Source: Hyaloraphidium curvatum SAG 235-1
Lineage: Eukaryota > Fungi > Monoblepharomycota
Length of the DNA: 64,000 nucleotides
Reading direction: 5' to 3'
Assembly: GCA_025558095.1 (NCBI GenBank)
Contig: JAIVFI010000029.1
Coordinates: 434,001 to 498,000 of the forward strand
A program made the position numbers and the translations under genes. Under the pieces are notes generated by a model. The model did not search any database, was not told the origin of the DNA, and saw only the letters and a program-made list of their open reading frames with translations. Below, piece by piece: positions 33,958 to 56,471 of the stretch (the first letter of the stretch is position 1; every line of letters begins with the position of its first letter).

Positions 33958-35325
33958 CTGTGGGTCCCGCGCTACAGCTCAGCGCGCACCACCGGGCAGG
34001 CGGACCCGGCGCGGACCCACTTTCCTGCGCACCGCACCGGGTGCCAGCAGGAACCTGTGGGGGCCAAGCCGCATCAGCATCATATGATACGGAAGGTCCC
34101 GGATCGCGTCCGCGCGTGCTCCCGCCTCCTGTAATCCGTCCGTCCGTCCCGTCCGGCGATCGGCACTGGCGCAAGAGCTGTGGGCAGGACAAGCTAGTTG
34201 AGCTGCGATCCACGGGACGCGGATCGCGAGCCTGAATGTGTCCACCTCCATCCGTCCGCCCTTCATCCGGCGAGGAGCGTGACCGCTGTGGGCGGATCAT
34301 CATTCTTCGATCCAAAGGTCGTGCGGATCGCAGGCAAGAATGCGCCCACCTCCCGTCCGTCCGGTCCCCATCCAGCAATCTGCATCGGCGGCGCGCAAGA
34401 GCTGTGGGCCCCAATCGTTGATCGGCGCTTCATGATCCAAATGGCGCGGATCGCGGGCAGGAAGGGGCCCACCTCCCCGTCCGGATCCACCTCCGTGTGC
34501 CGCAGTCCGCGCCGAAATGCCGATCCGCGGAGCTGTGGGCCAACGACGAGTACGTGGACGTCAGGCTTCGGATTGCCGTCGAACGTCCGTGCGCTGTGGG
34601 ATCAGGTTCCAGTGCGTGGTCCGTGAATGCGGCGGCGCCGTTCCCGGACGACACTGCCCCACCTCGAAGTACATCCGCGGTCCGGAGTCCGTGCGCAGTT
34701 GTGCTCAATCGCGAAGCGCCTGCGTGGTTCCAAGGTCGCCGTCCATCCCGTCCAGGGCGGTGCAAGTGCGCTGCCGATGGTATGTGCGCAGCATGCTGTG
34801 GGACGGCAAGACAAGATCACACCGCATCGGGATGCAATCAACGGCCGGGATGGTCCGACCTCCCTCCGTTGCCAAGTGTTTGCTGTGGGAAGCATTTCAA
34901 GCCAACGGTGAGGAGGACCGTTGTCCAGAGCGTGGATCGCCACCGTCCCACCTAGTCGATCGCGGCGGATCCGATTCCCCCCTCTCGATCTCCTCTCCAC
35001 GCCGAACCTGCCGTGAGCTCGTCCACCGAAGGGTCAGCCTGCTGTGGGAGCAAAGAGACGTGCTATAGATCAGGAGCAAGTCCGGATCGTTGCCGTCCGC
35101 GCGACCCACCACCCTGCTCCGTCCGGGATGTCCGATGTCCAATCTGGATCTCGATACGCCTGCATGTCTGTGGAACACACGGACATCACACACGATCACG
35201 ACTCGCAGTCCGATCGGGGCGGTGCAGGTCCCCCCGTGTCGTTGGTCCGCCCGTCAAAGCTGTGGGTCGAGACGGGATGCTGGCGCTCAGCGCAAGTGTG
35301 CCGATCGGAGCTCCGCCCGTCCCAC
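33958..35325 (-). repeat. Array 1 of about 10 hairpin intron-like units (GTGGG...CCCACAG on minus strand)
   Basis: Units start on + at 33958, 34055, 34178, 34286, 34402, 34594, 34796, 34883, 35042 and 35260 (CTGTGGG); each ends about 60-72 nt later at CCCAC or a close variant, usually followed by CT. Confidence 0.75.
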
Positions 35326-35986
35326 CTCGCAATCCGTCCCAGGTCCGGCACGGTCCCGGCGCAGCAAGGCCCTCGTCCGCAGCCGTGCTACGTCGATGTC
35401 CCGACTGGTGCCGATCCAGCTCTGCGATCCGGATTCCGTGGAGATTCGGCTTCCTGTGGCACAAAGCTTCATGGACAGGTGCAACCTGGCGGCGGACCAT
35501 GCCCGAGCCTTTTCCGCGGTCGAATCACTCGGGACTTCGTCCTGATCCTGATCCCAGATCCCGTCCATCCGACCTCCACACGTCCCAGTCCGGCTCCTCG
35601 GATTCTTCCCCGGCATCCGATGAGCTCGGCAAGTTTCCGCGTTGTCCGCGGTGCCGGCCGCCGACTCGGTCCCGCGCGTTGAGGGACGGCCACGGACAGC
35701 CGCCGGGGTCTGCAGTTGGCACAGAGATTCCGGAGCGCCACTGCGCTCGCTTTCAGCGGCCGGAAGATGAACGGAGGGGAGAGCATGCGGCGCCAGAGCG
35801 GGCTTGTGGGAGACATCTGCGGGGCAACGACTGGGAGGCAGCCGCTCCGTCGGGGCAGGCACAGGCGGCGACGTGAGCGTGACGGCCACACAGCAGTAGC
35901 TGAGTGCAGCCAATGGGGAGACGGGACGGCATGTGCGGGCGTCAAACAGACGGGTTGTTGGTGAGTCATCGGTCCGACCAGGCGAA

Positions 35987-36634
35987 NNNNNNNNNNNNNN
36001 NNNNNNNNNNNNNNNNNNNNNNNNNNNNNNNNNNNNNNNNNNNNNNNNNNNNNNNNNNNNNNNNNNNNNNNNNNNNNNNNNNNNNNNNNNNNNNNNNNNN
36101 NNNNNNNNNNNNNNNNNNNNNNNNNNNNNNNNNNNNNNNNNNNNNNNNNNNNNNNNNNNNNNNNNNNNNNNNNNNNNNNNNNNNNNNNNNNNNNNNNNNN
36201 NNNNNNNNNNNNNNNNNNNNNNNNNNNNNNNNNNNNNNNNNNNNNNNNNNNNNNNNNNNNNNNNNNNNNNNNNNNNNNNNNNNNNNNNNNNNNNNNNNNN
36301 NNNNNNNNNNNNNNNNNNNNNNNNNNNNNNNNNNNNNNNNNNNNNNNNNNNNNNNNNNNNNNNNNNNNNNNNNNNNNNNNNNNNNNNNNNNNNNNNNNNN
36401 NNNNNNNNNNNNNNNNNNNNNNNNNNNNNNNNNNNNNNNNNNNNNNNNNNNNNNNNNNNNNNNNNNNNNNNNNNNNNNNNNNNNNNNNNNNNNNNNNNNN
36501 NNNNNNNNNNNNNNNNNNNNNNNNNNNNNNNNNNNNNNNNNNNNNNNNNNNNNNNNNNNNNNNNNNNNNNNNNNNNNNNNNNNNNNNNNNNNNNNNNNNN
36601 NNNNNNNNNNNNNNNNNNNNNNNNNNNNNNNNNN
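35987..36634. other. Assembly gap (N run)
   Basis: 648 N bases. Confidence 1.
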
Positions 36635-36804
36635 AGTCGCCGGCGGCGGCGCCGTGGCCACATGCGGCCGGCGGGGCCGCAGGTTGTGGCCGGCAGTCGT
36701 GGGGGTCGCCATGGGAGACGGTAGCGGCGAGGTCGACGTTGGGTGCGTAGTCCGCGGCCGCGGCCTCCTGTGGTCCGCCGCTTATATGGTGCGAAGCGCA
36801 GGCA

Positions 36805-36942
36805 ACTCGCGAGTGCATCGCAAGTCGCTCGCGAGTGACTTGCGAGCGACTCGCGAGTGACTCGCGAGTCACTTGCGAGTCAACCGCGAGCCAACCGCGA
36901 GTCAACCGCGAGTCAACTGCGAGTCGAGTCGACCGCGAGTTC
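36805..36942. repeat. Tandem ~11-bp near-palindromic repeat (ACTCGCGAGTC-type), followed on minus strand by TATAAG
   Basis: About 12 degenerate copies; TATAAG on minus strand near 36785; an ATG at 36712 reads into the gap. Confidence 0.85.
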
Positions 36943-36950
36943 GCCCGCAC

Positions 36951-39911
36951 TTCTCGCAGACGGTCGACGAGCACCTCGTGCACCTGGAGCTCCTCTTTGA
37001 CCGACTGCGCGAGGCCGGGATGACTCTGAAGCTGGCCAAATGCAAGTTCTTCCGCCGCGAGGTCAAATACCTCGGGCATTACGTCACCGCCGACGGCCTC
37101 AAGGTCGACCCCGAGAAGACCCGCGCGGTGGACCAGTTCCCCCGCCCAACGACCAAGAAGGAGCTCCAATCGTTTCTCGGCCTCTCCAACTACTATCGCC
37201 CCTTCATTGCCGGCTACGCCAACATTGCCAGCCCGCTCACCCGCCTGACGCAGGACGGCGTCTCGGTCTCTCGGGCCTGGGACGACGCATGCGAGGCCGC
37301 CTTCCGTATGCTAAAGGAACGGCTTACGTCGGCGCCCGTGCTCCGTCGCCCCGACTTTTCCAAGCGCTTCGTCTTGTTCACGGATGCCAGCGATATCGGC
37401 CTCGGCGCGGTGCTCAGCCAGCGGGACTCCGATGGCAAGGAGTACGTCATCGCCTACGCCAGCCGCGCTCTGCAGCCGAACGAGCGCAAGTGGGACACTC
37501 GGGAGCGCGAAGCCCTGGCCGTTGTTTGGGCATGCGAGCATTTCCGGGCGTGTTTGATCGGGGACGAGTTTGAGGTGGTCACCGACCATAGCGCCCTCAA
37601 ATGGCTCTTGGAGACCTCCAAGCCGGGCCGCCTACAGCGCTGGATCCTCCGGCTCTCGGACTTCAGGTTCCAGATCATCCATCGCTCGGGCAAAGCGAAC
37701 TCCAACGCCGACTTCCTGTCTCGTCAGCTCGTGGCGCCGTCGCCCGACGAGGACGTGCCTATGGGCGACCCCGAGGAAATCTTGGACATCCCTGCCTTTT
37801 GGCCCCCAAACCCTCCCGACCCCTTGCCTTTTTCTTCTTTTTCTGGGGGGGGACGGGCGCCCGGATTCCTCTCCGGGAGTGATCTCGGTCAGACTTCCCG
37901 TTCTTCGTCAACCCCAGTCACCGAGTCAGACTCGGGACGAGCTACTGCGGGTTCCTCAGTCAATTGTGAATCAATGGAGCGAGTGCTGTCTGGCACGGAG
38001 TTCCCGGCCACGGTTGCCGCAGTGGAGGGAACCCTGTGGAGCGATCCGGGGACCCTGCCCGAGGCTGCGGCACCGGAGACGCAGATCCTCCTGCCGATCC
38101 CAACGACGAACGCACAGGTCGACCCGGCAGACGTGCCTGAGCGAGACCTGGCGTTCCTTCATCCGGCACTGCTTGAGGTGCTACCCGATGTCGGGGGCAT
38201 CAGTGCTATTGACCTTGCCGACGTCAGATCCCGGGATGCCCTGCGCAAAGTGCAAGAAGCCGACGTCGAGACCAGCGCGCTGATCCGCTTCGTACGAGAC
38301 GGGGAGCTCCCTCCCAACGTGAATCTGGCCAAATTCTGCAAGAAGTACGGCGAGCAGTACTTCCTCGCTACGGACGGCGTGCTCTGCCGGCGCGATGTAC
38401 TCGCGACTGGTACCCGTCGTATCCCGGTCACCCAGCTCGTGATACCGCACGAGCTGAGGGAGGCCTACCTGCAACGTGCGCACGACGATCCCCTGAGCGG
38501 GCACGTCGGGCGACACCGGGCGTACAGCAATCTGCGGCGCCGCGTATATTGGGTCGGCATGGCGCACGACGTTCGCCGCTGGACGCGAGCCTGCCTTACA
38601 TGCATGACCCGGAAGATGCCTTCGGTATCGAACCAGGGCTTACTGAAATCGGTTCCTCTCACAGGTCCCAACGAGGACATCTACATCGACTACATCGGCG
38701 AGATCAATCCGGCCACGCCCCGCGGCAACAAGTACCTTCTCGTCGTCTACGATCCGTTCACTAAATGGGTCGCGGCGTATCCGACTCCGGACCTCTCTGG
38801 GCCGACGACGGCGAAGCTGCTCTATACGCGATGGATTCTCGAGCACGGTCTTCCGAAGCGGATTCACCACGACAACGCCTCGAACCTGGACAACCATTAC
38901 ATGGAGTACCTGCTCAAGCTACTCGGCATCAACCGGGGCCTGGTCACGGTTGGGCATCCCAGGGCTTCCCTCGCGGAGCGCCCGAACCGGTGGATCATCG
39001 ACGCCCTGAGCGCAGCGGTCTCCAAGAACTACCAGACATGGGACGAGGACATCGTGGGGGTCATCTTTGCCTTCCGGACCTCCATCCACGCGACGACCGG
39101 CGAAACTCCGTTCTTTCTGATGCATGGTCGGGATGCTCGTATTCCGCTCGACCTACTTTACGACGAGACCGAGATTCGCGAGCCAGTGCACCTGCGGGCC
39201 AGCGACGAGGAGGACAAGAAGACAGAGGATGAGCGCCGGCGGACCTACGTCGTGGAGCTCGTGGCGCAGCTTCGTGCGGCCTACGACCTGGTGGCCGAGA
39301 AGATGGCCGCAGCGGCGGAGACTCGGAACGCCAAGGCCAACGCTACCCGGCTTCCGATTACCTTCCGCCCCGGCGACCTCGTGCTCATCTGGGGACCAGA
39401 ACGACCGCGCAAGGGCGAGCCGGGCAAGTTCGTCTCTCGTTATCTTGGGCCCTACCGCATCGAGGAGTCAGGCCACACCGAGCTCACCTGGAAGTGTAGA
39501 CACGTCTACGAGACCGACCACGTCACCACTGTGCATGTGGACCGGCTGGCGCGCTACAAGCCTTGGGAGTCGGCCACCTTCAACGCGCGCTCGTGGAACG
39601 CACGCGCCCCGGAGCTCGCCGCCGGTGAAGAGCTCGATCTCTCGGAACCGGTGAACGAGTTCGAAGAGGAAATCGAGGTCGAGAACGCGCTTGGGAACGA
39701 GCAGGAGTACACCGTCGAGGACATCGTCGGCCACGAGGGCCAGGGTCACGGACTCAAGTTCGAGGTCAAGTGGCGGGGCTTCGCTCGCACGACCAAGCTC
39801 CCTCTGGACATGTTGCACGGCGCCATAGGGATCGTCCGCGCCTATGCCGATCGCGTTGGTCTCCAGCTCCCGACGGGTCTCCCCAGGCGCATGCGGACTC
39901 GGCGTCGCTAG
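36951..39911 (+). CDS. pol: pol 3' half: RT C-terminal part, RNase H, integrase, chromodomain
   Basis: FSQTVDEHLVHL...KCKF...YLGH; TDASDIGLGAVL; HHCC zinc motif; IDYI/HDNA/AERPN (DDE); GPYRI; EYTVEDIVGH...FEVKWRGF. Confidence 0.92.
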   Translation, partial: FSQTVDEHLVHLELLFDRLREAGMTLKLAKCKFFRREVKYLGHYVTADGLKVDPEKTRAVDQFPRPTTKKELQSFLGLSNYYRPFIAGYANIASPLTRLTQDGVSVSRAWDDACEAAFRMLKERLTSAPVLRRPDFSKRFVLFTDASDIGLGAVLSQRDSDGKEYVIAYASRALQPNERKWDTREREALAVVWACEHFRACLIGDEFEVVTDHSALKWLLETSKPGRLQRWILRLSDFRFQIIHRSGKANSNADFLSRQLVAPSPDEDVPMGDPEEILDIPAFWPPNPPDPLPFSSFSGGGRAPGFLSGSDLGQTSRSSSTPVTESDSGRATAGSSVNCESMERVLSGTEFPATVAAVEGTLWSDPGTLPEAAAPETQILLPIPTTNAQVDPADVPERDLAFLHPALLEVLPDVGGISAIDLADVRSRDALRKVQEADVETSALIRFVRDGELPPNVNLAKFCKKYGEQYFLATDGVLCRRDVLATGTRRIPVTQLVIPHELREAYLQRAHDDPLSGHVGRHRAYSNLRRRVYWVGMAHDVRRWTRACLTCMTRKMPSVSNQGLLKSVPLTGPNEDIYIDYIGEINPATPRGNKYLLVVYDPFTKWVAAYPTPDLSGPTTAKLLYTRWILEHGLPKRIHHDNASNLDNHYMEYLLKLLGINRGLVTVGHPRASLAERPNRWIIDALSAAVSKNYQTWDEDIVGVIFAFRTSIHATTGETPFFLMHGRDARIPLDLLYDETEIREPVHLRASDEEDKKTEDERRRTYVVELVAQLRAAYDLVAEKMAAAAETRNAKANATRLPITFRPGDLVLIWGPERPRKGEPGKFVSRYLGPYRIEESGHTELTWKCRHVYETDHVTTVHVDRLARYKPWESATFNARSWNARAPELAAGEELDLSEPVNEFEEEIEVENALGNEQEYTVEDIVGHEGQGHGLKFEVKWRGFARTTKLPLDMLHGAIGIVRAYADRVGLQLPTGLPRRMRTRRR

Positions 39912-39981
39912 TAACACCAACGACGTCTATCCGGTCACAGCACTACCATCTCTGTGCTCCGATCCCCGGCTTTTCACTGAC

Positions 39982-41090
39982 TCAAACCCGACGTACTACC
40001 TCGAGCCTATCCTCGACCCCCTCGAACGCCAACTTGTGATACCCGGACTGAAAATGCGTGTTCAGATTGCCCAGGAGGCCCTTAGCCTTGTGCTTTACCA
40101 GATGGCACCACGGGAACGAGCATACCGCCACTTCGCCCTTGGTGGGGCTCCGGTACAGTTCGCCGGCGTACGTTCCGGCAATCTTCCATCGGAGGAAGGA
40201 GCCTGCCGGCACGGCATCAGGGACCTTCTTCGTCACCCGTTCCGCCTTCAAGCCCCAGACCGGCGACGACTTCTTCATCTGGCACATTCAGTGACGATCA
40301 GCGCTTGTGGGGCGTACTCCCGTCGAGCCGTTCACCTGCGCAATCTGCTCCCGGGCCTCCCCGCGCTGCACCACATGCCCCTCGTCTTTACCTGAAGTTG
40401 CCGTTTGGGCCGTCTGGAAGGCGCTCCCTTGTTCAGTGGCGGCCTCGAAGTCGCCTAAGTGGTCCAGCTCCCAAGAGGGCGCATGAAGCGTGACTGACAG
40501 CACGGGGACTTCGTCGGCCGCCTCGAGCTCCTCCCTCGAGTCCGCCGCCGACTCGCCCTCGCCGACGGAAGGCGCACCCTTCGACGACATCGCCGGCAGG
40601 AAGACGCCGGAGGTCCGGGTTGCGGCCGCGGCCGCGATCGGGTCGTTGCCTCTGGCCCCGCCAGCCTCGCGCAGCTTGGCGGTCCCGCCGGCCTCGCGCA
40701 GCTCGGCGACGAGCCGACGGAGCACTCGGACCTCGACAACGACGTTCCCAGCCTCTTCGGCCAGCGGCAACATCCCGCGCATGGCGGCCAGACGCACCAG
40801 TTGCAGGAAGCAGTCGACCACGTCGTCCTCCTGGCGCGGCGCTGAGCTCCCGTTCGAGGACCACGCCGCTACGCTCTTACCTTGGTGCACAGCAGGACGT
40901 CGAAGGTCGGCAACCGAACCTCGAACCACGAACTCGGCGGGACGACGTTCGGCAGCTCCGCACTCATGACAGGCGCGGAGATCCCCCCAGCTCTTCTGGA
41001 CCCTACGTCGCGATCCCCCGCGAGCGCTTTCGTCGACGCAATGGCGTACGGCCCTCGCTCGCGCCCCGTCCCCCGTGGCGGGGACTGGTG
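39982..41090 (-). CDS. Accessory ORF of the retroelement with C-terminal BED/C2H2-like zinc finger (one in-frame TGA at 40288)
   Basis: The frame continues ...SADRH*MCQMKK...VCSFPWC...GNLNTHFQSGYH; antisense to the integrase half. Confidence 0.45.
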
Positions 41091-41094
41091 ACCC

Positions 41095-43191
41095 GGTGTA
41101 AATGTCGTCGATGAAGACCACCAAGCAGTACCACTGGAGGCCGGCGAGGAGCTCGTCCATGATCCGAGCAAAGGTTGCAGGAGCGTTGGTAAAGCCCATG
41201 GCCATCCGCTCCCACTGGTAGAGACCGCGGTGCGTCGTGAAGGCCGTCTTTTCCTTGTCCTCGTCGGCCACCTCCACGTGCCAAAAGCCGGAGCGGATGT
41301 CGCAAACGCTCCACACCTTGGCCGCGCTGAGGAGAGCGAGAGTGTCGCTTGGGTTCTTCATCGGGTAGACGTCGCGCTTGGTGGCGGCGTTGAGCTTCCG
41401 GTAATCGATCACCAGGCGCCATTCGCCCGAGCCGTGCCCTTTTGGCACCATGATGCAGGGCGTGGCCCAGGGGCTTCGCGAGGGGACGACTACGCCCTGC
41501 ACGAGCAGGTCGTCGATGATCTTGTCCATTTCCCCGCGAAGCCGGAACGGGGTCCGGTACGGCATCTGGTGGATCGGCTTGAGGTCGCCCGTGTCGATCC
41601 GGAAGCGATGGTTGCGCAGCTTGCCGATCCAAGGACCAAACACGTCCCGGTAGCGGTCGCAGAGCTTATGGAAACGAGGTTTGTCCCCCTCGCTCAGGAT
41701 CGTTTGGTCCATCTTGAGCTCGATAGCCTCGACCGGAGGAGGCTCCACGCCGGGAGGCTGAGGTGGTCCAATCGATCCCGGCGAGGGCACCGCGAACAGA
41801 TCGATGGTCTCCTCGACCGTGAGCGTGGATTCGGCCGGTTCGGTGTGGGGCAGCTCGGGCTCCAGCATCGAGATCTGCGCGGGAGCCAGATACGTGGGCG
41901 GTTCCGGAGCGAGAAATCCAGGAATCCGCACGCGGAAGCGGCCGAGGTGGGTGCCCGGGCCGATCGTGACCGGTGTCGTCCCGTAGTTGCGGATGAGAAT
42001 CGGCAGCCGACCGTCTCTGTCGGGCGTCGCCGACGGGATGATGAAGAGGCGATCGAACGGCGAAGTGTTCGGCGTCTCGATGACCCCTGTCAAGTCCATC
42101 TCCACGACGGTCGCCAAGGGAGTCGTCGGGGCCAGCTCAGCGGTGATCGAGACGTCCTCGTTGGGGTAGACCGTGATGGAGGTGGTTGAATGGAGCGGGG
42201 CGACCAGGTGTGATCCGAAGAGCGGTCGCGCAACAATGTGCATTGGCACGACGACCCCCTCCGGATCGTCCTTGAAATAGAGGACCGGCGTCTCCCAGTC
42301 CATCTGAACGCGTAGGGCGGAGAGCCAAGGGGTGCCGAGGATCACGTCGTCCATGAGACCGTCCATGATGGCGACGTCCATGACGCAGTGTTGATTCCCG
42401 ACCAGGATGTCCATCTTAGCAACTCCGCGGACCCACATGGTTCCGCCGGCCGCGGCCGTGCTGAGGGTGCCGAGTGTCCATGGTTTGATCGGTGGCGACG
42501 GGTGGATCCGGCAGAAGAAGGACGACCGAACCGCCACCACTGAGGCACCGGAGTCGACGAGGGCCGCGGGGGTATTCACGCCGTTGACCCATGCGGAAAC
42601 GCGTGCCGCCTGATAGTGGAACTGCACTTGCGAAGTCCACGTCCAGCGATCCGGCGGAGGGGCGACCGGAGCAGGTGGCCGCGGGCGAGGCCGAGGGCCA
42701 GGCAGCGGTGGTCGTGCGTAGGCGGAAGGAGGAGGGGGCCTTTCGAAAGGTCCGGGAACGGCGCGGACGGTCGGGCCCTCGTGCATAGGTGCATCCGCTG
42801 ATCCCGCGTCCGCATCCTGTGCCGCCGGTTCACCGTTTCCCACGACCTCGACCGAGCCGGGCGACGCCGAATCCGCTGCCGGCGGCGGGGCCAGGGTCTC
42901 GTCGATCGGCATGAGCGCCTCCCGCTGCTGACGAACGGCGGCCTGTCGAGCTGCCTCCGCCTCGAGGAAGAGGATGTACTCCGTGCCCCCGAAGGGCCAA
43001 TGATGAACGTGGTCCTCCGCCGTCGGTTCATCGGTCGCGGAATCCGACAACTCCGGCGATCCGCCAGGAGATGAAGGGTCCGTGCCGTCCGGCAGCGGGG
43101 AAGTTCCAGGAAGAGGTTCCACATGTGGTTCAAGAGCTTGGATCTCTGCCCCCCTATGGCCGTGCGGCACTGAGGGCAAAGCTAGTTTTTT
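41095..43191 (-). CDS. pol: pol 5' half: aspartic protease, dUTPase-like spacer, RT N-terminal part ending at FIDDIYT
   Basis: ALVDSGAS; SPWATP, WRLVIDYRKLN, DIRSGFWHV, KTAF, MAMGFTNAPATF, FIDD. Confidence 0.92.
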
Positions 43192-44837: not shown

Positions 44838-44992
44838 GTTTGGCGAAGGGGAATGAACTTGGTTGACGGAATACGGTTGACAGAAAAGAGTGGCAGTCGA
44901 CAAGCGCCGGTGCCAGGCGAAGTTGTTTTTGGATTATCGAAGTCGAAACTGAAGTCGAACGAGGTGTCGAAGACCCGAGAGCAGGATCACGG

Positions 44993-45003: not shown

Positions 45004-45004
45004 G

Positions 45005-45480: not shown

Positions 45481-45582
45481 GGACGGCCGCGTGACTGCCG
45501 GCCGAGACCCACGCGGCGCCGGCAAAAACGCGATCAGCGCGAGGAGCGCGAACAGGAGGACGGTGAGGCGGCGGGGAGCCAT
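45481..45582 (-). pseudogene. Truncated secreted peptide gene copy (exon 1 only), cut by the LTR
   Basis: Matches 46897-46998; homology stops exactly at the LTR TG. Confidence 0.8.
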
Positions 45583-46025
45583 CGCGGTTTAGGTGTCGTT
45601 TGCGGGGGTGTGCAGGTTCGGTCCGAGCGGCGAGGCCTTGTCGGGCCGAATGCTGCGGGCTGGAGATGACGGACGTAGTAGTCACCAGTCCCTGAACTAG
45701 AGAGGTTCTACCGACGCTCGAAACTGTTTATCGGTTACACAAAGTGTGTCAGGGTAGACTGCCGGCTCCGATCGGAGCGTGATTGGAGCCATTTGGTGTT
45801 CCCCGACGTCGCCAGGTGGCCTGCCAAGGGACCTTAATTGCCGCTTCCCGTTTCAGTCAGGGCACGGCGTCGGGACGGTCCATCAAGCATCTGACGCGGC
45901 GACAGCACGTAACAAAACAAGCAGGCGTCCTTTCGTCGGTCGACGCTGCGCTTCTGTATGGAAGCCCGCAGAAACACCGGTCGCGAAAACTCTCGGGCTC
46001 CCCGTCCACCTTTGCAACATCCCGT

Positions 46026-46371
46026 TTACACCGGCACACGGCGCTCCAGCCCCTTGTCTGCCTCGTAGATGCAGCTGACCATGCCGTCGACCGCGCCGAC
46101 GCCTGCGGTGGCGCGAGTGAGTGACTCGCCGGAGTCGGTGCGGGCGCCGGAACGAACAGCGCTCGCCCTCGACGCACTCGGCGCACGAGGATCTCTTGAC
46201 GATCCGGGCGTCCCCGGTGGGGGCGGCGTTGCTGTGGGAGGGGGCCGGGCGAGTCAGGGGACGTTGAGGGATCGCTGTGGCGCGCCACGGCGGGACCCAC
46301 GCGGCGCCGGCGAAGAGCGCGATCAGCGCGAAGAGCGCGAAAAGGAGGACGGTGAAGCGGCGGGGGGCCAT
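46026..46371 (-). CDS. Secreted 4-Cys prepropeptide, copy A1 (3 exons, 73 aa)
   Basis: Spliced: MAPRRFTVLLFALFALIALFAGAANAAPTGDARIVKR-SSCAECVEGERCVGAVDGMVSCIYEADKGLERRVPV; GT-AG introns of 69 and 55 nt; 222+124=346 nt. Confidence 0.85.
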
Positions 46372-46648
46372 GGCGGCGCTTGGCTGCGGAAGGCAATTTG
46401 GAGTCTCTGGGGGATGGGGAGGCTGGTGTCGAAGGGTCACAGGTCCCTGACCGAACAAGTGCCCCGACCCTCCAATCTTCTTCCGCGTCAGTCAAGAGAT
46501 GGTGTGGGCGACAAAGTTAAGGAAAGGCGACATGTTGGACCCCGGCTTTACATTGGAACCCTCTGTAAGCACTCTTTGAGATAACTGTTGAAAGCCAACG
46601 CTTGGGAAACAGCGCTTGAAGCTCCGCATAACCTCTGCACCCTCTTGT

Positions 46649-46998
46649 TTATACCGGCGTGCGGCGCTCCAGCCCCGTGTCGGCCTCGTAGATACAGCTG
46701 ACCATACCGTCGACCGCGGCGACGCCTGCGGGCGGGTTACCGCGTGAGGGGCCCGCGAGAACCGGTGCGGGTCAAGGAACCCACAGCGCTCGCCCTCGAC
46801 GCACTCGGCGCACGAAGACCTTTTGACGATGCGGACGTCCGGGGCGGGGGCGGCGGTGCTGTGGTTGGGCAGGGTGTGTGGCGTCAGGAGCATGAGGGAC
46901 GGCCGCGTGACTGCCGGCCGAGACCCACGCGGCGCCGGCAAAAACGCGATCAGCGCGAGGAGCGCGAACAGGAGGACGGTGAGGCGGCGGGGAGCCAT
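46649..46998 (-). CDS. Secreted 4-Cys prepropeptide, copy B (1-nt deletion in exon 1)
   Basis: Core SSCAECVEGERCVAAVDGMVSCIYEADTGLERRTPV; the frame is restored only if the 70-nt intron 1 is retained. Confidence 0.7.
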
Positions 46999-47441
46999 CG
47001 CGGTTTAGGTGTCGTTTGCGGGGGTGTGCAGGTTCGGTCCGAGCGGCGAGGCCTTGTCGGGCCGAATGCTGCGGGCTGGAGATGACGGACGTAGTAGTCA
47101 CCAGTCCCTGAACTAGAGAGGTTCTACCGACGCTCGAAACTGTTTATCGGTTACACAAAGTGTGTCAGGGTAGACTGCCGGCTCCGATCGGAGCGTGATT
47201 GGAGCCATTTGGTGTTCCCCGACGTCGCCAGGTGGCCTGCCAAGGGACCTTAATTGCCGCTTCCCGTTTCAGTCAGGGCACGGCGTCGGGACGGTCCATC
47301 AAGCATCTGACGCGGCGACAGCACGTAACAAAACAAGCAGGCGTCCTTTCGTCGGTCGACGCTGCGCTTCTGTATGGAAGCCCGCAGAAACACCGGTCGC
47401 GAAAACTCTCGGGCTCCCCGTCCACCTTTGCAACATCCCGT

Positions 47442-47787
47442 TTACACCGGCACACGGCGCTCCAGCCCCTTGTCTGCCTCGTAGATGCAGCTGACCATGC
47501 CGTCGACCGCGCCGACGCCTGCGGTGGCGCGAGTGAGTGACTCGCCGGAGTCGGTGCGGGCGCCGGAACGAACAGCGCTCGCCCTCGACGCACTCGGCGC
47601 ACGAGGATCTCTTGACGATCCGGGCGTCCCCGGTGGGGGCGGCGTTGCTGTGGGAGGGGGCCGGGCGAGTCAGGGGACGTTGAGGGATCGCTGTGGCGCG
47701 CCACGGCGGGACCCACGCGGCGCCGGCGAAGAGCGCGATCAGCGCGAAGAGCGCGAAAAGGAGGACGGTGAAGCGGCGGGGGGCCAT
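47442..47787 (-). CDS. Secreted 4-Cys prepropeptide, copy A2 (same as A1)
   Basis: Duplicate of A1 at +1416. Confidence 0.85.
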
Positions 47788-48063
47788 GGCGGCGCTTGGC
47801 TGCGGAAGGCAATTTGGAGTCTCTGGGGGATGGGGAGGCTGGTGTCGAAGGGTCACAGGTCCCTGACCGAACAAGTGCCCCGACCCTCCAATCTTCTTCC
47901 GCGTCAGTCAAGAGATGGTGTGGGCGACAAAGTTAAGGAAAGGCGACATTTGGACCCCGGCTTTACATTGGAACCCTCTGTAAGCACTCTTTGAGATAAC
48001 TGTTGAAAGCCAACGCTTGGGAAACAGCGCTTGAAGCTCCGCATAACCTCTGCACCCTCTTGT

Positions 48064-48409
48064 TTATACCGGCGTGCGGCGCTCCAGCCCCGTGTCGGCC
48101 TCGTAGATACAGCTGACCATGCCGTCGACCGCGCCGACGCCTGCGGTGGCGCGGGTCAGTGACTCGCCAGAGTCGGTGCGGGCGCCGGAACGAACAGCGC
48201 TCGCCCTCGACGCACTCGGCGCACGAGGATCTCTTGACGATCCCGGCGTCCCCGGTGGGGGCGGCGTTGCTGTGGGATGGGGCCAGGCGAGTCAGGGGAC
48301 GTTGAGGGATCACTGTGGCGCGCCACCGCGGGACCCACGCAGCGCCGGCGAAGAGCGCAATGAGCGCGAAGAGCGCGAAGAGCAGGATAGTAAGGCGGCG
48401 GGGGGGCAT
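48064..48409 (-). CDS. Secreted 4-Cys prepropeptide, copy C
   Basis: MPPRRLTILLFALFALIALFAGAANAAPTGDAGIVKR-SSCAECVEGERCVGAVDGMVSCIYEADTGLERRTPV. Confidence 0.85.
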
Positions 48410-48953
48410 GGCGGTGATTGGGTGTCTTTTGCGGCGGAGTGGGGGTTCGACCGATAGTAAGTGTGTCTTCGGGCCGAAACTGTGGGCTGGACAAAGGGAC
48501 GGCCGGCCCACAAGCGAATATTACGTCGACACAAACTGGACGATGATTGTCAGGTTCGGGCTGCCAGCTCCAATCGGAGGGAGATGACTGGTGTCTCCGA
48601 GCGCTGGATAGTCGCTGTGGGGTCGTGGCTGGCCTAGGGACGCATCCTGACGGAGTCGGTCAAGCACCGAAGTGGGCGATTGAAAGCACATTTCCACGAG
48701 TCTACACTGCTTCCTGAAACATTCGTGGCAACAAGGCTTGAGACCAGCGCTTGAAGCATCCTCCCCGTTCGCAGCATCCCGTTCCAGGTCGGGGCACGGC
48801 AGCAGAACTGTCCATCAAGGCGCTGATGCGGGCGACATCATGGAGTTAAACAGAGCAGGCGTCCTTTTCGGTCGACGCCGCGCTGCTGTATTGATGTGAA
48901 AACCCCACAGTCGGAGCAATTGACCTCTCCGTCCACCCTTCCCAACCCGTTGT

Positions 48954-49317
48954 TTACACCGGCGGCGCACGGCGGTCCAGCTTGTTTTCGGCCTCGTAGA
49001 TGCAGCTGACCATGCCGTCGACCGCGCCCACGCCTACGGGGGGGTGGCCGTGTGAGCCGCCCGGAAGCCCGGTCCGGCCATCTCGCAACTTACAGCGCTC
49101 GCCCTCGACACACTCGGCGCAAGACGACCTCTTCACGACGTGGACCTTGTCGGTGGGGGCGGCGGTGCTGCGGCGGCGGACGGGGCGGCGTGGCGCGTGA
49201 GCGGCGGCGGGGCAACTAGGCGGACCGCCCGCCTGGCGGGACCCACGCGGCGCCGGCGAAGACCGCGACGAGCGCAAAGAGCGCGAGGAGGAGGAGCGCG
49301 AGGCGGCGGGTGGCCAT
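48954..49317 (-). CDS. Secreted 4-Cys prepropeptide, copy D
   Basis: MATRRLALLLLALFALVAVFAGAATAAPTDKVHVVKR-SSCAECVEGERCVGAVDGMVSCIYEAENKLDRRAPPV; intron 2 donor is a canonical GTAAGT. Confidence 0.85.
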
Positions 49318-49557
49318 GGCGTGAGTGTTCTCGGCGGTGCGGGTGAGTGATTGGACGGTGTCAATAGTCGGCGTGGCTGGGGAGGGACTTCCGAACGTCG
49401 ATGGGATAGTGGGGGCGGACGGAGTCACCGGCCGGCCACACAGAAAGGGCCGATTCGGTTACTGCAGCTGGGCGGGCAGATCATTGATTCTCATAGATCA
49501 AGTCATGGCCAGCTCCGACCCTCGTCATCGCCGTTGCGACGTCGGCCCCGGGGGCAG

Positions 49558-52500
49558 TCACCCCTCCTGGGAAGCCTCCCCCGCCCATCCGGCCATCCAA
49601 CCCCCCATCTCGTCCCAGTGTTCCCCCTTGGTGTACTCGTGCAGCCCTAGCATCCCCTTGAGCCTCAGCATCACGTACTGCCGCGCCATGTACCACGTGT
49701 CGAGCGCGAACGCACATTCCTCCTTCCCCTTGGACCCCTTTTCCCGCAGCCGTCCCGAGAGGTCCGCGTCCGAGGGTACCTGGCAATCCGGCAGCCCGCG
49801 GTGAGGACGGAGCACCCTCGCCGTCGCACCGGCCGGGAACTCCGGGTCCCCCGCCGCGGCGTAGAACAGCGGCCCCCGGGTCGGCAGGGGATGCGGGAAC
49901 GAGAGCGCGCTCATCATCTGCCCCGTGGCCGACTCGAGCGGCCCGGCGATCTCGCCGTTGTTGTCCCACGCGAGGTCGTGCCGCGGGTGCAGTAGCGCGG
50001 AGCCTTCCGGGCACGCGGCCAAGGGCGGGGCGCCAGCGCGGCCGGTCCCGTTCGCGCAGGCCGGCTGGTAATCCCGCAGCGCGAGGTCAGCACCGGGGTG
50101 CTCCACCAGCAGCCCCACGGACCGCAGCGCCTCGACCACCATCCCCCCAGCCGCCCGCGAAAAAACCCACGGCGCCTCCTCCGCGAACGTGCCCCCGCAC
50201 ACTCCACTTGGCATCCACGCGTCCGTCACGATCCGCTTCTCCGGCACCCCGGCGCGGAGCAAGGCCGTCCGCAGACCGGCGATGTTGTACCCGTCCATCC
50301 CGTTGGCCACCGACCCCGTCAGCCACAGGGGGGGCACCGCCTGCTTCCCGCGGAGCTCCGGCATCCCCAGCCGCCCCCGCTCCGGTCCGAGCGCCGCGAC
50401 GACCTCCTCTTCCAGCCGCGCCGCGCACGCCCTGTCCTCCCTCAGGCTCGCCCCGCCCTCTTGCACAAGCGTGGCGTTCAGATCGGGCACGGCCATCTGG
50501 AGCACCGCCGCGTCCACCCGCATCCTGCGCACCACCACCCCCGAGAACCTCGACCCGCTCGACAGGCCGAACGAGAGCACCGGCACGCGCTGCCCGGCCG
50601 CCAGCCCGCGCGCGCGCCGCACGTGGGCCAGCGCCGCGGCGGCCGAGACCGCGGTGACGCGCAGGTCGAAGTTGCCGCAGCTGTCCTCCAGGTCCTGGTG
50701 CGCGCACTTGCTGTCGTCCAGCAGCCCCAGCGGCACCGCGACCGGCATCAACCCCCTCCTCTCTAGCGCGCGGATCAGCCCGCGGAGCAGGGGCATCCGC
50801 GAGGCGAACGCGGGCCCGTTGCACGCCGTGCCGAAAACCAGCGCAACCCCGACCGCGCGCTCGGGGGGCAGCGCGATCGAGACCCAGGGTGCGATCCCCG
50901 ACACGTTGCGGCCGTCCCGCGAGGTCAAGTTGAACCCCGGCTCCAGCGCCCGCAGCGCGTGCACGGGCTCCCCCGGCGTCGGGGTCCACGCGTCCCCGCC
51001 GGCTTCGGGGGGCAGGCACTCGTCGATCCCCTTGACCACCTTCGGCAGCCCCATCCTGTCGTGCGGCGGAACCGGCGCCGTAGCATTGCACCCCGCCACC
51101 CTCCCCGCATGCTCCCCGCACGCGGCCCAGAGCATCCACGCCGTCCCGCCCCGCGCCTCGGTCCCCCTGTCCCCCGGCACGGGCAACCGCCTGTAATGCA
51201 GCCCCGCGTAGTGCGCCAGCTGGAGGTAGTACCACCCCGCGGCCTCGTGCCCCGCCGGCACCGTTTCCGCGAGCGCCGAGCCCGCGCGCATGGCCAGCGC
51301 GTTGAGGAGGCCGGAGCCGTGCGGGGCGAGGACGGCGGAGGAGGAGGCGAAGAGGGCGAGGGAGGCGCGGACGCTCAGGTTGCCCGGGAACGGGATCGGA
51401 TCGAGGGCGTAGGACCGGAGGAGGAGGGAGAGGGCGGCGAGTTCGGAGGGGGGTTGGCCCCGCGAGGAGGCGGCGGAGCGGTCGACGAGGATCACCCTGT
51501 TTGCGCGGCCGGGGTGTTCGACGTCGATCTCGGGGGCGAGGGAGCGCATGGCGTCGCGGAGGGCGAGCAGGTGCACGGGGTGCGTGCGCGCGCCCACGAG
51601 CGGCTTGTCCAGCAAATGGGCAGTGCGCGCGGCGACGCGGCCCGAGACGAGGCGGTCCGCGAGGCCGAGGTGCGCGAGCCATTCCACGGCGTAGGGCAGG
51701 GTGTCGTTGTTGCCGGGCGCCCAGCGGCGGGCAAAGTGGCGCGGGACGTGCACCAGAACGCCGGGGTTGGCTTTGAGGTACGGCACGAGAGGGTATATGC
51801 GGCCGACGAAATCGGCCGAGAACCAGTAGTAGTTGTCGGCCGGGGGCACGACCACCACGACCTCGTCCAGCACGTGCAGCCTCACCGGCCCAGTGCCTGA
51901 GGCATTCAGGGCCTCCCTGTCCCAGGCCATCACCGCCTCATGCGGTTCCGGCGTGTCGTCGTCGTGGGGCATCACCAGCTGCGAGACGAAGGTGCAACCG
52001 CCGCCGGGAGGGGGGTACGGGACCTCGGCGAGGTCGGGGCCGGCGTAGGGAGGCCAGAAGTGGACGAAGCGGCCGTCGGGGGCGCGCCGGCGGAGGTCAC
52101 GCAGCGGCTCGGGGCCGCCCATGGCTGATTCCAGGTGGCGTTCTGTCCGATCCGGCGACACGTTGCGGGCGGCCTCGGGTTCCGGGTCGAACAGCTCGAC
52201 AAGCACCCCCTCGTACCCCTCGGCTGTCCCGCGCCGGGCCCGGTTGGGCCTCACGGCCTGCAGCATGCCGTTGGGGTTCACCACCACGCCGTGCGCTGTG
52301 AGCACGCCCGGCAGCGCGTGGGCAAACGCGGGGGCGTTGAGCGCCGCGCGCACGGCGGCGGGGTCGTTGCGCCCCGCGGCGTCCGCCACCTCCTTCGTGC
52401 GCACGTTCATGACCATCAACGCGGGGTCGATTGGCGGCACGGGCACCTGGCGCAGCACGGCCTGGCGGGTGACGCCGGGCAGGGAGAGGTCGGCGGTAGC

Positions 52501-53079
52501 TCCGTGCAGGCTCGGTGCGGCGGCGAGGGCCCGCACGTTATTGGACATGCGGTCGGCGACCTCGGAGCGGCGCAGCGGCACGTCGCAGGGCACATTTTGG
52601 AGGAGCGTCTCCCACAGTTCGCCCGGCGGCGTGCGGTCGCAGCGGCGGACGACCGACAGCGATTGCAAAGGCGGCGGCGTCCAGGGGCCGCCCGACGCGT
52701 CCAGATTGAGGGCGTCCGCGATCGCCGCCACCGACACCGCGGCCACGTCTGCCGGCAGCGGCCCCCGCCCCGCCTCGGCCGCTGTCCGCAGTGCGTCCCA
52801 TTCGGCGCTCTCCGCGACAACGTCGAACGCGTCCGCCCAGTCCAGCGGCGCCAGCGTGACGAGAGATCCTTTAAAATTCGCGGCATCGGAGAGCGCGAAC
52901 GGCCTCAACGCCTCGCGCACGGCAAACAGAGCAGGGGAACGGGATCCCGCCTTGGCGGCCGCAGATGTCCACGCCGACAGCGGCACGCGAACCTCGTCGT
53001 GCCGCCGCGCCGCTGCAATGGCGAGCACTAAAAGCGCAACGGCCGCCGCCGTCCACCGCACAGCGAACCGGGGGCGCAT
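49558..53079 (-). CDS. Type II membrane protein: GT61 (DUF563) glycosyltransferase fused to an alpha/beta-hydrolase-like domain
   Basis: N-terminal TM anchor; NYYWF..DF...I, VILVDRS, ALFASSSAVLAPHGSGLLNALAM...AETVP...YYLQLAHYAGLHY (GT61 pattern); C-terminal SFGLSSGS nucleophile elbow, DAW, LHEY; single open frame. Confidence 0.8.
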   Translation of the reverse strand: MRPRFAVRWTAAAVALLVLAIAAARRHDEVRVPLSAWTSAAAKAGSRSPALFAVREALRPFALSDAANFKGSLVTLAPLDWADAFDVVAESAEWDALRTAAEAGRGPLPADVAAVSVAAIADALNLDASGGPWTPPPLQSLSVVRRCDRTPPGELWETLLQNVPCDVPLRRSEVADRMSNNVRALAAAPSLHGATADLSLPGVTRQAVLRQVPVPPIDPALMVMNVRTKEVADAAGRNDPAAVRAALNAPAFAHALPGVLTAHGVVVNPNGMLQAVRPNRARRGTAEGYEGVLVELFDPEPEAARNVSPDRTERHLESAMGGPEPLRDLRRRAPDGRFVHFWPPYAGPDLAEVPYPPPGGGCTFVSQLVMPHDDDTPEPHEAVMAWDREALNASGTGPVRLHVLDEVVVVVPPADNYYWFSADFVGRIYPLVPYLKANPGVLVHVPRHFARRWAPGNNDTLPYAVEWLAHLGLADRLVSGRVAARTAHLLDKPLVGARTHPVHLLALRDAMRSLAPEIDVEHPGRANRVILVDRSAASSRGQPPSELAALSLLLRSYALDPIPFPGNLSVRASLALFASSSAVLAPHGSGLLNALAMRAGSALAETVPAGHEAAGWYYLQLAHYAGLHYRRLPVPGDRGTEARGGTAWMLWAACGEHAGRVAGCNATAPVPPHDRMGLPKVVKGIDECLPPEAGGDAWTPTPGEPVHALRALEPGFNLTSRDGRNVSGIAPWVSIALPPERAVGVALVFGTACNGPAFASRMPLLRGLIRALERRGLMPVAVPLGLLDDSKCAHQDLEDSCGNFDLRVTAVSAAAALAHVRRARGLAAGQRVPVLSFGLSSGSRFSGVVVRRMRVDAAVLQMAVPDLNATLVQEGGASLREDRACAARLEEEVVAALGPERGRLGMPELRGKQAVPPLWLTGSVANGMDGYNIAGLRTALLRAGVPEKRIVTDAWMPSGVCGGTFAEEAPWVFSRAAGGMVVEALRSVGLLVEHPGADLALRDYQPACANGTGRAGAPPLAACPEGSALLHPRHDLAWDNNGEIAGPLESATGQMMSALSFPHPLPTRGPLFYAAAGDPEFPAGATARVLRPHRGLPDCQVPSDADLSGRLREKGSKGKEECAFALDTWYMARQYVMLRLKGMLGLHEYTKGEHWDEMGGWMAGWAGEASQEG

Positions 53080-53305
53080 GGCCCGTGCGGGGCACCGGCC
53101 GTGCACGAGTCACGCGTCGCCCGTTGCCACAAGACACAAGACACCCTTCTCCGAACGGGTCAGTGAGGTGGTCACACGCAAGCGAACGTAAGTCATTCCT
53201 CCACATGTCCTACAACTTCTTCCAAAATAGATACATGGAACAGTGGGCTGGCGTCGCCCGCATCCGGTCGCCGAGCACACGCCTTTGGCACCCCTCCTTG
53301 ACCCC

Positions 53306-53681
53306 TCAAACGGCCCTCCTCTCCAGCGCCACCCTGTCCTCGTAGATGCAACTGACCATCCCGTCGACCGCGGCCACGCCTGTTCGGGTTCCGGGTAGCG
53401 TGTGAGTGGGTGTCCACTGAGTGGGTGTCCACCGTGCGCGGGGAAGGAAGGGGGACCCACAGCGTTCGCCCTCGACGCACTCGGCGCACGAGGACCGCTT
53501 GACGATCTGGACTTCGCCCGTGGGGGCGGCGGTGCTGTGGGCGTGGGGCGACGGTGGAGAGGGAGGGGTGAGTGGCGTTGGGGATAGCGTTGACCCGGGC
53601 GGGGGGAACGCACGCGGCGCCGGCGAACAGCGCAAACAGCGCGAGCAGCGCGAACAGGAGGACGGCGAGGCGGGGGGCCAT
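53306..53681 (-). CDS. Secreted 4-Cys prepropeptide, copy E
   Basis: MAPRLAVLLFALLALFALFAGAATAAPTGEVQIVKR-SSCAECVEGERCVAAVDGMVSCIYEDRVALERRAV. Confidence 0.85.
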
Positions 53682-54100
53682 CTTCGGTGGTGATTCGCGC
53701 GGGGTGCAGGTGGGTGGGGGATGTCTTGGGGACCGAAGGGGGACGGCTGACGTAAAAGCCGTCGGTCCGAGGAGGGGCGTTTTGGCGACGGCCAAGGGAG
53801 GAGATGGCGGCATCGGGTGGCGGAGCATCCTGGATTGCCTGAACTGGATGGAGGTCCCTGGGCGGGGCGCGGGCCTCGTTTTTCCCCGGCGGCCGCGGAT
53901 CCCCGAGCCGGCCCAGCACCCGTCTGGAGATCGACCTCGCGGGCCATCGTCGATCCGTTCATGGCCGTGCAATCCCTCCAATAGCCCGTGTAGTTCCCCC
54001 CACCGGCTCGCCCTCCAAAAGATATGGCGCCAACCCACTCTTTCCACCCCGGGACTTCCCCGTCCCTTGCCGACGCCGCGGCGTCCCGCCCCGCCATCCC

Positions 54101-54432
54101 TCACACCGCGTTCCCCCTCCTCTCCAGCGCCCTCTCGTAAACGCAGCTGACCATCCCGTCCACGGCTGCCTCGCCTGCACGTTCCCCGCGGGGATCAGCC
54201 GACCGGTGCTCCAGGGGCGAGAAGAGCGACCCACATCGCTCGCCCTCGAGGCACTCGGCGCACGACGACCGCTTGACGATGCTGCCTTCCGCGGTGGGGG
54301 CGGCGGTGCTAGCGAGCGGGGTGAGCGGCGCCGGGACCGCGACCGCCCAGCAGAGGGAGGGACCCACGCGGCGCCGGCGAGCAGGGCCAACAGCGCGAGC
54401 AGCGCGACGAGGAGGAGGGTAACGCGTGCCAT
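54101..54432 (-). CDS. Secreted 4-Cys prepropeptide, copy F
   Basis: MARVTLLLVALLALLALLAGAATAAPTAEGSIVKR-SSCAECLEGERCEAAVDGMVSCVYERALERRGNAV. Confidence 0.85.
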
Positions 54433-54559
54433 TGCGGTTGTTGGGCGGCGGATGGGTGGTGTGTGAGGGTGGGACGTGGGATGGGGGGTGAGGGACGGGC
54501 GGTGTTGTGTCCCTGCTGATGGGTTTTCGCGATCGGGGACGGGGACGCGGGGTGATGCG

Positions 54560-54960
54560 CATGCCGCGCATCCCCGGGCTCGCATCACGTCCGCTGCAGC
54601 TCATTGAATGCGGGACGGGCGTCGGATCGCGGAGGCAGCGCGTTTCCGGCGCGGGCCGAGGACAGAGGCAGGGGTCTGCGGGCGGCTTCGAGGGCGAGGA
54701 TGGGACGCTGCCGTTGCTGCGGATGCTGCGGGCGGCGAGGGTCCGATCGATGATGGACACAACCGAGGGCGGATGTGAAAAACCGGGGGAAGCGAGTGGA
54801 TGGGGATGGGAGGAGGGGATCGACACGGCGGAGGTGGGGAGGACGGGGACGGGGGCTGGAACGGTAGGACAGTTAGGCGGGCGGGAATCGTAGACCGCGT
54901 GGTTTACGCTGTGATCGCACCGGTGAGAAGCAATTGGACTCGGTTCCCCGTCCTGCGGCG
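54560..54960. repeat. Conserved non-coding block, copy 2 (homologous to 33540-33950)
   Basis: Same ordered motifs and same position relative to the adjacent array as copy 1. Confidence 0.7.
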
Positions 54961-54963
54961 CGG

Positions 54964-56471
54964 CTGTGGATGCACGCCAGCCGAGTCAGCCGGTCCCGCA
55001 GGCAACGATGACCGAGGGGAGACCCACCTCCGCCGCGAAGGGCGCGCGGGAAGGTCCCTGTGGGAGCGCCGAGACACCAACTTGGTCCGGAGGACCGATC
55101 CGAACCGCGGCCGCGCGCACCCACCTCCCCAATCCGTCCCCGTCTGGCCATCGTCGTCACTTGCACCGGCGCCGTGGCGCGAACGGCTGTGGGTCGAAGT
55201 CGTGTCGCGTGATCCGAAGGGCGCGGATCGCGAGACGGAATCGGCCCACCTCCCCGTCCGTTCATTCGTCGTCCCGATCCGGTACCATCGAAAGAGCTGT
55301 GGACGATGAACCATGGTCACCAGCGATCGGAAGGGCGCGATCGCGGGCTTGACGGGCCCACCTCTACGGCGACCAAAGGGCCGGATCGCGGGTTGGAACG
55401 AGCTCTTCCCCGTCCGGTCCACATTCCGTGGGGAGCAGTCCGCGCCAGCAAAGTGCCGCATCCGCCTCAAAGCTATGGGCCAGGAAATCATCAGTCGCTG
55501 TCAGGATCCCGGACGGCCTGGCGGCGCCTGCGTCCTGCCCACCGCGTCTGGGTAGTCCTTTGCTTGCTGCAGGTACGCTACCACTTAATGCCGAGGCGTG
55601 CGCTGGCATCAACGGATGCGAACCCACCTTTGCGTTCGATCCTGGCCCTTCCAATCCCCAGGATCCCAAGTCAGCAAGACGATCCCTGTGAGGACCCGAC
55701 GGGACGAACAAAGCGACCAGGATTAACCAGGTCGCAGGCGCGTTCGCAAAGTCCCCACCTTCCTGTCCGTCCAGGTCCAGCGGGAGAGCCGCGGTGAGCG
55801 TCACCGCGCCGCCGTTGGAGACCTGTGGGATTTCCGTGCCTTCGTGGATCACAGCGTCGCGGTGATGTCGAAAGTCAGCCGGTCCCACCTGCCTTCGTCG
55901 GCCCGCTGTGGGATCATCAAACAGGGGCTGGACGATCAGTACAAGGTTCCCGATCGCCGCATGCTGGTGCGTCCCATTTCTTCCCGTTGCACCATCGAGT
56001 CCAGTCAAGGCTCATTCCGGGGTCGTGAGTCGAGTCCTCCTGTCCGTTTGTGTGCCTGTGGGATTGGAAGACATATTGCGCTGATCGACGCTCTCGTGCA
56101 CCGATCGCAGACGTCCACCACGTCCCACCTGAGGCTTCGACTCTAGCCCATCCGGTCGACGAAGCGATGTCCCACGTCAGGTGAACCTTGCTGTGGGACC
56201 CATGTCAACCATTTGATCGGGCTCTGGGCCGGATCGGTGCCGTCCATCCGTCCCACCTCCCCATCGCCCGCGAAATGTCCAGGAATCCAGGTCCGGCATC
56301 ACGTCGCCAAGGTGAGGAAGGGCTGTGGGGTGCAAGAGGGACACCAAAGAGTCAGAGTTTGCAATCTGGGCGGTGGCCGGAGCGATCCCACAGAGCCGAC
56401 CCCCCATCTGCCGTGAGATGCACAGGAGGCTGATCAAAAACTCAGCCACATCGCAGACCTTGCCCTCCCAC
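54964..56471 (-). repeat. Array 2 of about 13 hairpin intron-like units
   Basis: Units start on + at 54964, 55058, 55187, 55297, 55473, 55567, 55686, 55823, 55906, 56056, 56191, 56323 and 56408; 61-73 nt each. Confidence 0.75.

Follow-up and report, generated by a model that had tools for sequence, protein, structure and literature searches.

What is known of mirtrons comes mainly from single introns in the coding genes of animals, most of them fortuitous, and we know of no Drosha-type microRNA (miRNA) processing in fungi. Non-coding host genes offer a second point of reference, for which we take genes of the GAS5 type to be the comparison. Here we analysed a window of 64,000 nucleotides (nt) from the early-diverging fungus Hyaloraphidium curvatum SAG 235-1 (assembly GCA_025558095.1, contig JAIVFI010000029.1, positions 434,001 to 498,000 of the forward strand), which contains two arrays of consecutive, intron-shaped hairpins on its minus strand. 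Like the conventional mirtrons of animals, these units have predicted hairpin ends at putative splice sites, a predicted short 3′ overhang, an intron length below 100 nt and an intron-rich host (Wen et al. 2015, PMC4556696). Agotrons, a further kind of intron-derived RNA, occur within coding genes, measure 80–100 nt and show more structure than other introns do (PMC4869172). A literature search of incomplete coverage returned no paper on such loci in H. curvatum and none on mirtrons in fungi or chytrids. On our analysis the architecture is unusual, real and under selection, with a function that is predicted: each locus would be a non-coding host gene with mirtron- or agotron-like introns as its products, a reading to which we give a probability of roughly 0.45.

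Two colinear arrays of intron-shaped hairpins

The arrays together hold 25 minus-strand hairpin units of 61–73 nt each and one truncated unit. Their positions are window coordinates, the window lying on contig C29; C6, C7, C9 and C25 below are further contigs of the same genome (31.9 Mb, 55 contigs).

33958-35325, minus strand: array 1, 12 intron-shaped hairpin units
35325-35260, ~35236-35168 (donor lost), 35109-35042, 34951-34883, 34859-34796, 34662-34594, minus strand: array 1 units 1-6
~34593-34533 (donor and preceding exon lost), 34472-34402, 34349-34286, 34245-34178, 34125-34055 (GC donor), 34020-33958, minus strand: array 1 units 7-12
54964-56471, minus strand: array 2, 13 units and one truncated unit
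56471-56408, 56391-56323, 56256-56191, 56128-56056, 55977-55906 (donor AT), 55888-55823, 55758-55686, minus strand: array 2 units 1-7
55627-55567, 55542-55473, 55361-55297, 55249-55187, 55124-55058, 55027-54964, minus strand: array 2 units 8-13
55362-55404, minus strand: truncated unit of array 2, homologue of array 1 unit 34472-34402, with donor and 3′ half lost

Every unit ends in YAG (25/25), 18 of them in CCCACAG, and GTGGG opens 19 of the 25; GTGGA, GTCGG, GCGGG and ATGGG occur once each and the donor is lost in two, with GT or GC donors in 22/25. The spacers between units measure 16–133 nt, except for one of zero length. Exact GTGGG..CCCACAG units number 13 in the 2.9 kb of the arrays versus about 373 above background in the 31.9-Mb genome, a density some 400-fold higher, and 10 of the 20 back-to-back unit pairs found genome-wide lie within these two arrays. 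Both arrays are thus real and above chance. A unit reading GTGGG..CCCACAG on both strands occurs at C9:11343-11416, and a similar two-strand case at 56323-56393 of the window.

The two loci are colinear paralogues of about 2.3 kb each, whose alignment runs from 35986/56858 to 33576/54566 and shows about 60% identity and numerous indels. Unit 34472-34402 of array 1 is matched by the truncated unit of array 2, and one exon is absent from array 1. Tandem duplication of an exon–intron module is shown by a subfamily of mutually similar units toward the 3′ end (z scores of 3–7); most other pairs of cores are near random. Whole-genome DNA searches with both loci found no third DNA-level copy, each locus retrieving only the other. 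An earlier sequence-only reading of this DNA had given the same array coordinates, strand and unit lengths (with about 23 units) and had pointed to CCCATAG at 55473, CTGCAG at 55567 and a GCGACC/GGTCGC variant in the unit ending at 55686; all of these are present, and the colinear alignment, flanks included, and the mutually similar subfamily confirm the paralogy and tandem amplification that it proposed.

The spacers look non-coding

Joined exons, translated locally as a frame check, contain stops in all three frames in both arrays, extending to array 1 what hand-splicing of the distal exons of array 2 had indicated. The codon score of the spacers (−0.12) equals that of intergenic DNA (−0.12), as against 0.29 for held-out coding DNA. 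Length differences between six orthologous spacer pairs (8, 7, 10, 4, 8 and 28 nt) include no multiple of three, and the best-aligned pair, 75% identical, carries several single-base indels. Open reading frames (ORFs) over the arrays had no Pfam match. The regions containing the arrays, searched unspliced and therefore covering the exons only in that context, had no Rfam match at gathering or E-value thresholds and no tRNA. From the stops, codon scores and indels the spacers look non-coding, as had been claimed. A protein-coding micro-exon gene or pseudogene was rejected, there being no open or decayed frame, no frame-preserving indels and no coding codon use.

Unit ends are kept while the remainder changes

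Acceptor positions −7 to −3 can pair fully with GUGGG in 24 of the 25 units, leaving a predicted 2-nt AG overhang, and nearly all departures from CCCAC retain a G–U pair. At least 4.6 of the 5 terminal pairs were formed in 18/25 predicted ensembles. This 5-base-pair stem is nearly invariant and its only changes are G–U wobbles; of the earlier statement that the ends pair and co-vary, the pairing therefore holds and the covariation does not. The ends are about 93% intact, compared with 50–65% identity in orthologous cores and 47–75% in orthologous spacers, and only 10% of array core pairs exceed a z score of 3. Descent alone does not explain ends that stay intact amid diverged cores and spacers; the same paired ends in a changed remainder suggest genes built for the release of small RNAs by splicing.

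Inside the units, a GATC inner stem occurs in about 13 of the 25, its motif starting at position 20–23 in 11. Double changes affect three of its pairs, with a score reached by 1 of 500 shuffles for units that are related and were chosen for having the stem. The conserved scaffold ascribed earlier to many units is accordingly borne out for about half of them and missing from the rest. A covariance model was built from 13 units; those outside it score 10–23 bits, like ordinary introns. Among related units the 5′ arm (positions 6–22) and the middle are conserved (identity 0.53–0.80). The arms, described earlier as two variable ones, are not equivalent: the 5′ arm is conserved (identity 0.53–0.76, z scores 1.8–5.4) and the 3′ arm is free (0.24–0.53, z scores −1.0 to 2.1).

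Ordinary introns share the fold but not the constraint

Introns of the GTGGG..CCCACAG form are common in this genome: among lengths of 60–74 nt there were 422 matches versus 49 in a reversed control, or about 373 above background, the CCCGCAG variant being less enriched (363 versus 218). GTGGG is also the commonest donor among ab initio intron calls (80 versus 28 in the control), which served as control introns and of which about one-third are false positives. Near the arrays, neighbouring genes have RNA contig ends that agree with an intron with a GTGGG donor at 54367-54309 and with a CCCACAG acceptor at 53535. Genome-wide, GGTGGG is followed 94 times by a CGATC..GATC motif, whose second GATC often forms a CTGATC branch-like site.

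Full pairing of positions −7 to −3 with GUGGG was found in 17/80 ordinary GTGGG calls (10/45 in loci unselected for such introns) versus 24/25 units, and an exonic AG precedes the donor in 18/25 units versus 10/80 calls, as expected if U1 pairing is selected. The units are related and the control calls include the false positives noted above, so that the P values (1e-8 to 1e-11, Fisher) overstate independence and certainty; the contrast is still large. Folding, by comparison, did not set the units apart. Minimum free energy was −27.0 for array units versus −25.6 for end-matched ordinary introns (z scores −1.13 versus −1.0), terminal stem pairs numbered 4.9 versus 5.0, so that the stem is extended no further in the units, and a single stem-loop with at least 16 of the first 22 nt paired was predicted in 14/25 units versus 11/20 controls, which weakens the sequence-only reading. 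Because end-matched ordinary introns fold and score alike, a hairpin with GTGGG/CCCACAG ends is by itself no evidence, and folding stability was rejected as a distinguishing mark. Donors and acceptors of ordinary introns showed no covariation beyond shuffles. What distinguishes the arrays is the density of the units and the constraint on their ends, not the ends themselves. End-paired introns elsewhere have unrelated cores (2.5% of pairs with z above 3), and the best covariance-model match outside the arrays, at 32 bits with none above 33, lies in an ordinary coding intron of a gene pair on C25. That pair (C25:467149-468053 and 480774-481690) consists of inverted, coding-looking genes with back-to-back end-paired introns.

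Such introns being a normal class here, found back-to-back also in a C25 coding gene, each locus might instead make a spliced long non-coding RNA in which end pairing aids or tunes the splicing of close, short introns, the introns being waste and the function being carried by the spliced product or by transcription and splicing as such. Retention of the exonic AG and of YAG, the one spacer that is 75% identical, the conserved block downstream of the arrays and hairpins no stabler than those of ordinary introns all agree with this. Against it, about 80% of ordinary GTGGG introns manage without end pairing, most spacers are conserved no better than the intron 5′ arms, no exon has an Rfam match, and the asymmetry between the 5′ and 3′ arms is left unexplained. 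We regard this explanation as unlikely, although it survives best among the alternatives.

Locus ends, an assembly gap and expression

Outside the arrays the following features were recognized.

56813-56886, minus strand: predicted ordinary first intron of locus 2 (GTGCAT donor, GACTAAC branch site at 56837, CAG; ends unpaired; predicted from sequence)
56472-56812, minus strand: long 5′ exon of locus 2, with a non-coding codon score, homologous to 35986-35634 of locus 1 (z score 11.4)
35326-35986, minus strand: 5′ part of locus 1, whose homology to locus 2 reaches as far as the gap
54856-54920, minus strand: predicted ordinary last intron of locus 2 (GTGCG donor, CTAAC at 54876, TTCCAG)
54566-54899, minus strand: conserved downstream non-coding block of locus 2, comprising the end of the last intron and the putative last exon (z score 20.4)
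33576-33881, minus strand: conserved downstream non-coding block of locus 1, homologous to that of locus 2
35987-36634, no strand: assembly gap (run of N), about 660 nt upstream of the first array 1 unit and outside the arrays

The homologue of the last acceptor is retained in locus 1 at 33841. The first acceptor has been lost there: a branch-like GACTCAC persists at 35967, and the position of the acceptor reads CTG, not CAG. Antisense pairing between the downstream block and the arrays was not significant (z scores 1.7 and 2.4). On its left the gap is bordered by the locus 1 5′ region, homologous to locus 2 right up to the gap (z score 11.4), and on its right by sequence that is not homologous to locus 2 and consists of long terminal repeat retrotransposon with its 11-bp repeats and neighbourhood; homology is therefore not continuous from one side to the other. 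The gap leaves the arrays intact but conceals the start of locus 1, and ORFs spanning it were discarded as artefacts. Locus 1 abuts a retrotransposon; it may be decaying even if locus 2 should be active.

Expression was judged from the assembled contigs of one run, presumed to be RNA, in which contigs show presence and not absence. No contig of this run covers 54467-58000, a segment holding array 2 and a divergent ORF at about 57100. In the same run neighbouring genes were covered and spliced, including two genes for small secreted Cys peptides that were expressed and spliced.

A neutral or decaying relic, formed by tandem amplification of one exon–intron module or from an old pseudogene, with ends alike by descent and local gene conversion, would fit this lack of visible expression over array 2 in the one run. 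It would also fit the lost donors, truncated unit and lost exon, the retrotransposon at the 5′ end of locus 1, the related unit subfamily and a region rich in tandem duplications. Drift or conversion would not, however, spare the ends alone, and here cores that in most pairs are near random (10% of pairs with z above 3) stand beside ends that are about 93% intact; the spacers moreover carry no trace of a reading frame, and similar arrays exist at other loci. We consider a relic improbable.

A predicted splicing-based route to small RNAs

We return to the reading of each locus as a host gene whose introns are its products. The genome encodes a Dicer on C6 that combines a dimerisation domain with two RNase III domains, as well as other RNase III genes, three Piwi-domain (Argonaute-like) loci and DBR1. 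In the proposed route, an RNA polymerase II transcript with ordinary first and last introns and 12–14 hairpin introns between them would be spliced, and DBR1 would open the lariats. Each 61–73-nt intron would then close a stem of at least five pairs with a 2-nt AG 3′ overhang, and either Dicer would cut about 21–23 nt from the 5′ end, beside the conserved inner stem, or the whole intron would be bound by Argonaute. The guide would be the 5′ arm (GUGGG..., conserved between the paralogues), with the 3′ arm free save as branch and acceptor region. The arrays would have grown by tandem duplication of an exon–intron module drawn from the common end-paired intron class of the genome, followed by duplication of the locus and by the birth and loss of single units.

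Several results weigh against this route, beginning with the folding energies, the uncovered array 2 and the state of locus 1 described above. The donor is lost in 4/26 units, and strict branch sites occur in 9/25 units versus 10/20 controls. With an energy per nt per GC% of about 0.63 and large internal loops, the fold suits a Dicer duplex poorly; a fixed guide/star duplex is missing, given the free 3′ arm; and every 5′ seed would begin with UGGG. A scan of 264 kb for small-RNA targets found no near-perfect site and 40 weak matches versus 27 for shuffled sequences. The small-RNA host transcript proposed by the sequence-only reading thus emerges in part: non-coding spacers, tandem growth, selected ends with an AG overhang and genes for Dicer, Argonaute and DBR1 speak for it, whereas the folds and ends are shared with hundreds of ordinary introns and the scaffold is found in half of the units.

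The high predicted probability of the terminal stem in most units, an ACA or AUA just before the end in 23/25, the several RNase III genes and the weak branch sites of the inner-stem subfamily would also suit an unspliced polycistronic RNA. Its hairpins, as single-hairpin H/ACA-like guides or in the manner of a primary miRNA, would be cut out by RNase III or by trimming, and their splice-site look would be inherited. The ACA lies inside the terminal stem, however, its distance from the inner stem ranging between about 14 and 28 nt; several units have arms that pair with one another and leave no pocket, there is no Rfam match, and only splicing explains the retained exonic AG, GT and YAG together with the flanking ordinary introns. 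This scheme strikes us as more doubtful still. The units do not fit the architecture of a single-hairpin H/ACA guide RNA, which would have an unpaired ACA box about 14–16 nt from its guide pocket: here the ACA is in the terminal stem, and no Rfam match was found.

Similar clusters elsewhere

A pattern search found clusters of units with the same ends at C29:71009-71894 (minus strand) and C29:79906-80603 (plus strand), and at C7:134771-135153 and C7:139105-139506 (both plus strand), the C7 clusters with five units, two of which look paralogous. These C29 and C7 clusters are known from positions and pattern matches; by eye, the two units at C29:71 kb have longer terminal stems. The clusters, too, apparently come in paralogous pairs. 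Tentatively, and with less assurance than for the two loci themselves, we propose that at least six dedicated non-coding genes form a family in H. curvatum, in apparently paralogous pairs, each with 10–14 short introns released as distinct Dicer/Argonaute small RNAs.

An introner hotspot, in which a small transposon would have inserted repeatedly, its inverted ends being GTGGG/CCCAC and AG its target duplication, had been the alternative offered by the sequence-only reading and is very improbable: the AG-GTGGG..CCCAC-AG arrangement of 18/25 units has the form of a target-site duplication with terminal inverted repeats but is explained equally by splice signals, similarity runs through the flanking exons of colinear paralogous loci and is excluded by the introner definition (10.1101/2022.06.06.494994), covariance-model and DNA searches of the genome gave no dispersed copies (best outside match 32 bits), and the cores of end-paired introns elsewhere are unrelated.

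A metagenome scan for back-to-back units returned 20 loci, and those examined were unrelated (bacterial repeats and WD40-like genes). One of them, L044:1419-1871, is an unrelated bacterial intergenic repeat array with a period of about 123 nt that matched the search pattern. Two other metagenome matches, L032 and L049, whose CpG content is very low and whose origin may be human or another vertebrate, entered one composition tally only.

Neighbourhood of the arrays

The window also contains fungal transcription factors, a Gypsy element, a GT61 gene and a cluster of small secreted-peptide genes, and tandem duplications are abundant in the region. About 670 nt downstream of array 1, and on its strand, begins a Zn2Cys6 transcription factor gene (30222-33290, minus strand); between the last array 1 unit and the ATG of this gene one frame stays open, with a low codon score in the first half. 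The Gypsy-type element (36635-45405) abuts the gap; its pol pieces lie on opposite strands, and each of its ends carries 11-bp CTCGCGAG repeats. Eight tandem genes for small secreted Cys peptides surround the GT61 gene (45481-54432, minus strand).

Comparison with known systems

If the reading as a gene family is true, these loci would be polycistronic mirtron genes in an early-diverging fungus, and a non-coding gene made almost wholly of consecutive, selected hairpin introns would be a splicing-based route to many small RNAs in fungi. Ordinary introns would have been recruited as small-RNA precursors where a C-rich acceptor is by chance complementary to the commonest donor, GTGGG. The loci yield exact predictions that one small-RNA library could check cheaply.

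Introners share short introns, inverted ends and a flanking AG repeat with the units (Gozashti et al. 2022, 10.1101/2022.06.06.494994), but here similarity extends into the exons, the units are tandem rather than dispersed, and the cores are deeply diverged. Non-coding host genes of small nucleolar RNAs (snoRNAs) and miRNAs resemble the loci in their poorly conserved non-coding exons, many introns and structured intronic payload (PMC7719101). In the present loci, by contrast, the payload would be the whole intron, with no C/D or H/ACA architecture and no Rfam match. Agotrons are likewise short, GC-rich, structured introns with information in their 5′ part (Hansen et al. 2016, PMC4869172); their length and stability are not matched by array units of 61–73 nt whose folding equals that of end-matched introns. 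Compared with conventional mirtrons (PMC4556696), the units described here have large predicted internal loops and a free 3′ arm, and they stand 12–14 in a row within an apparently non-coding host in an early-diverging fungus.

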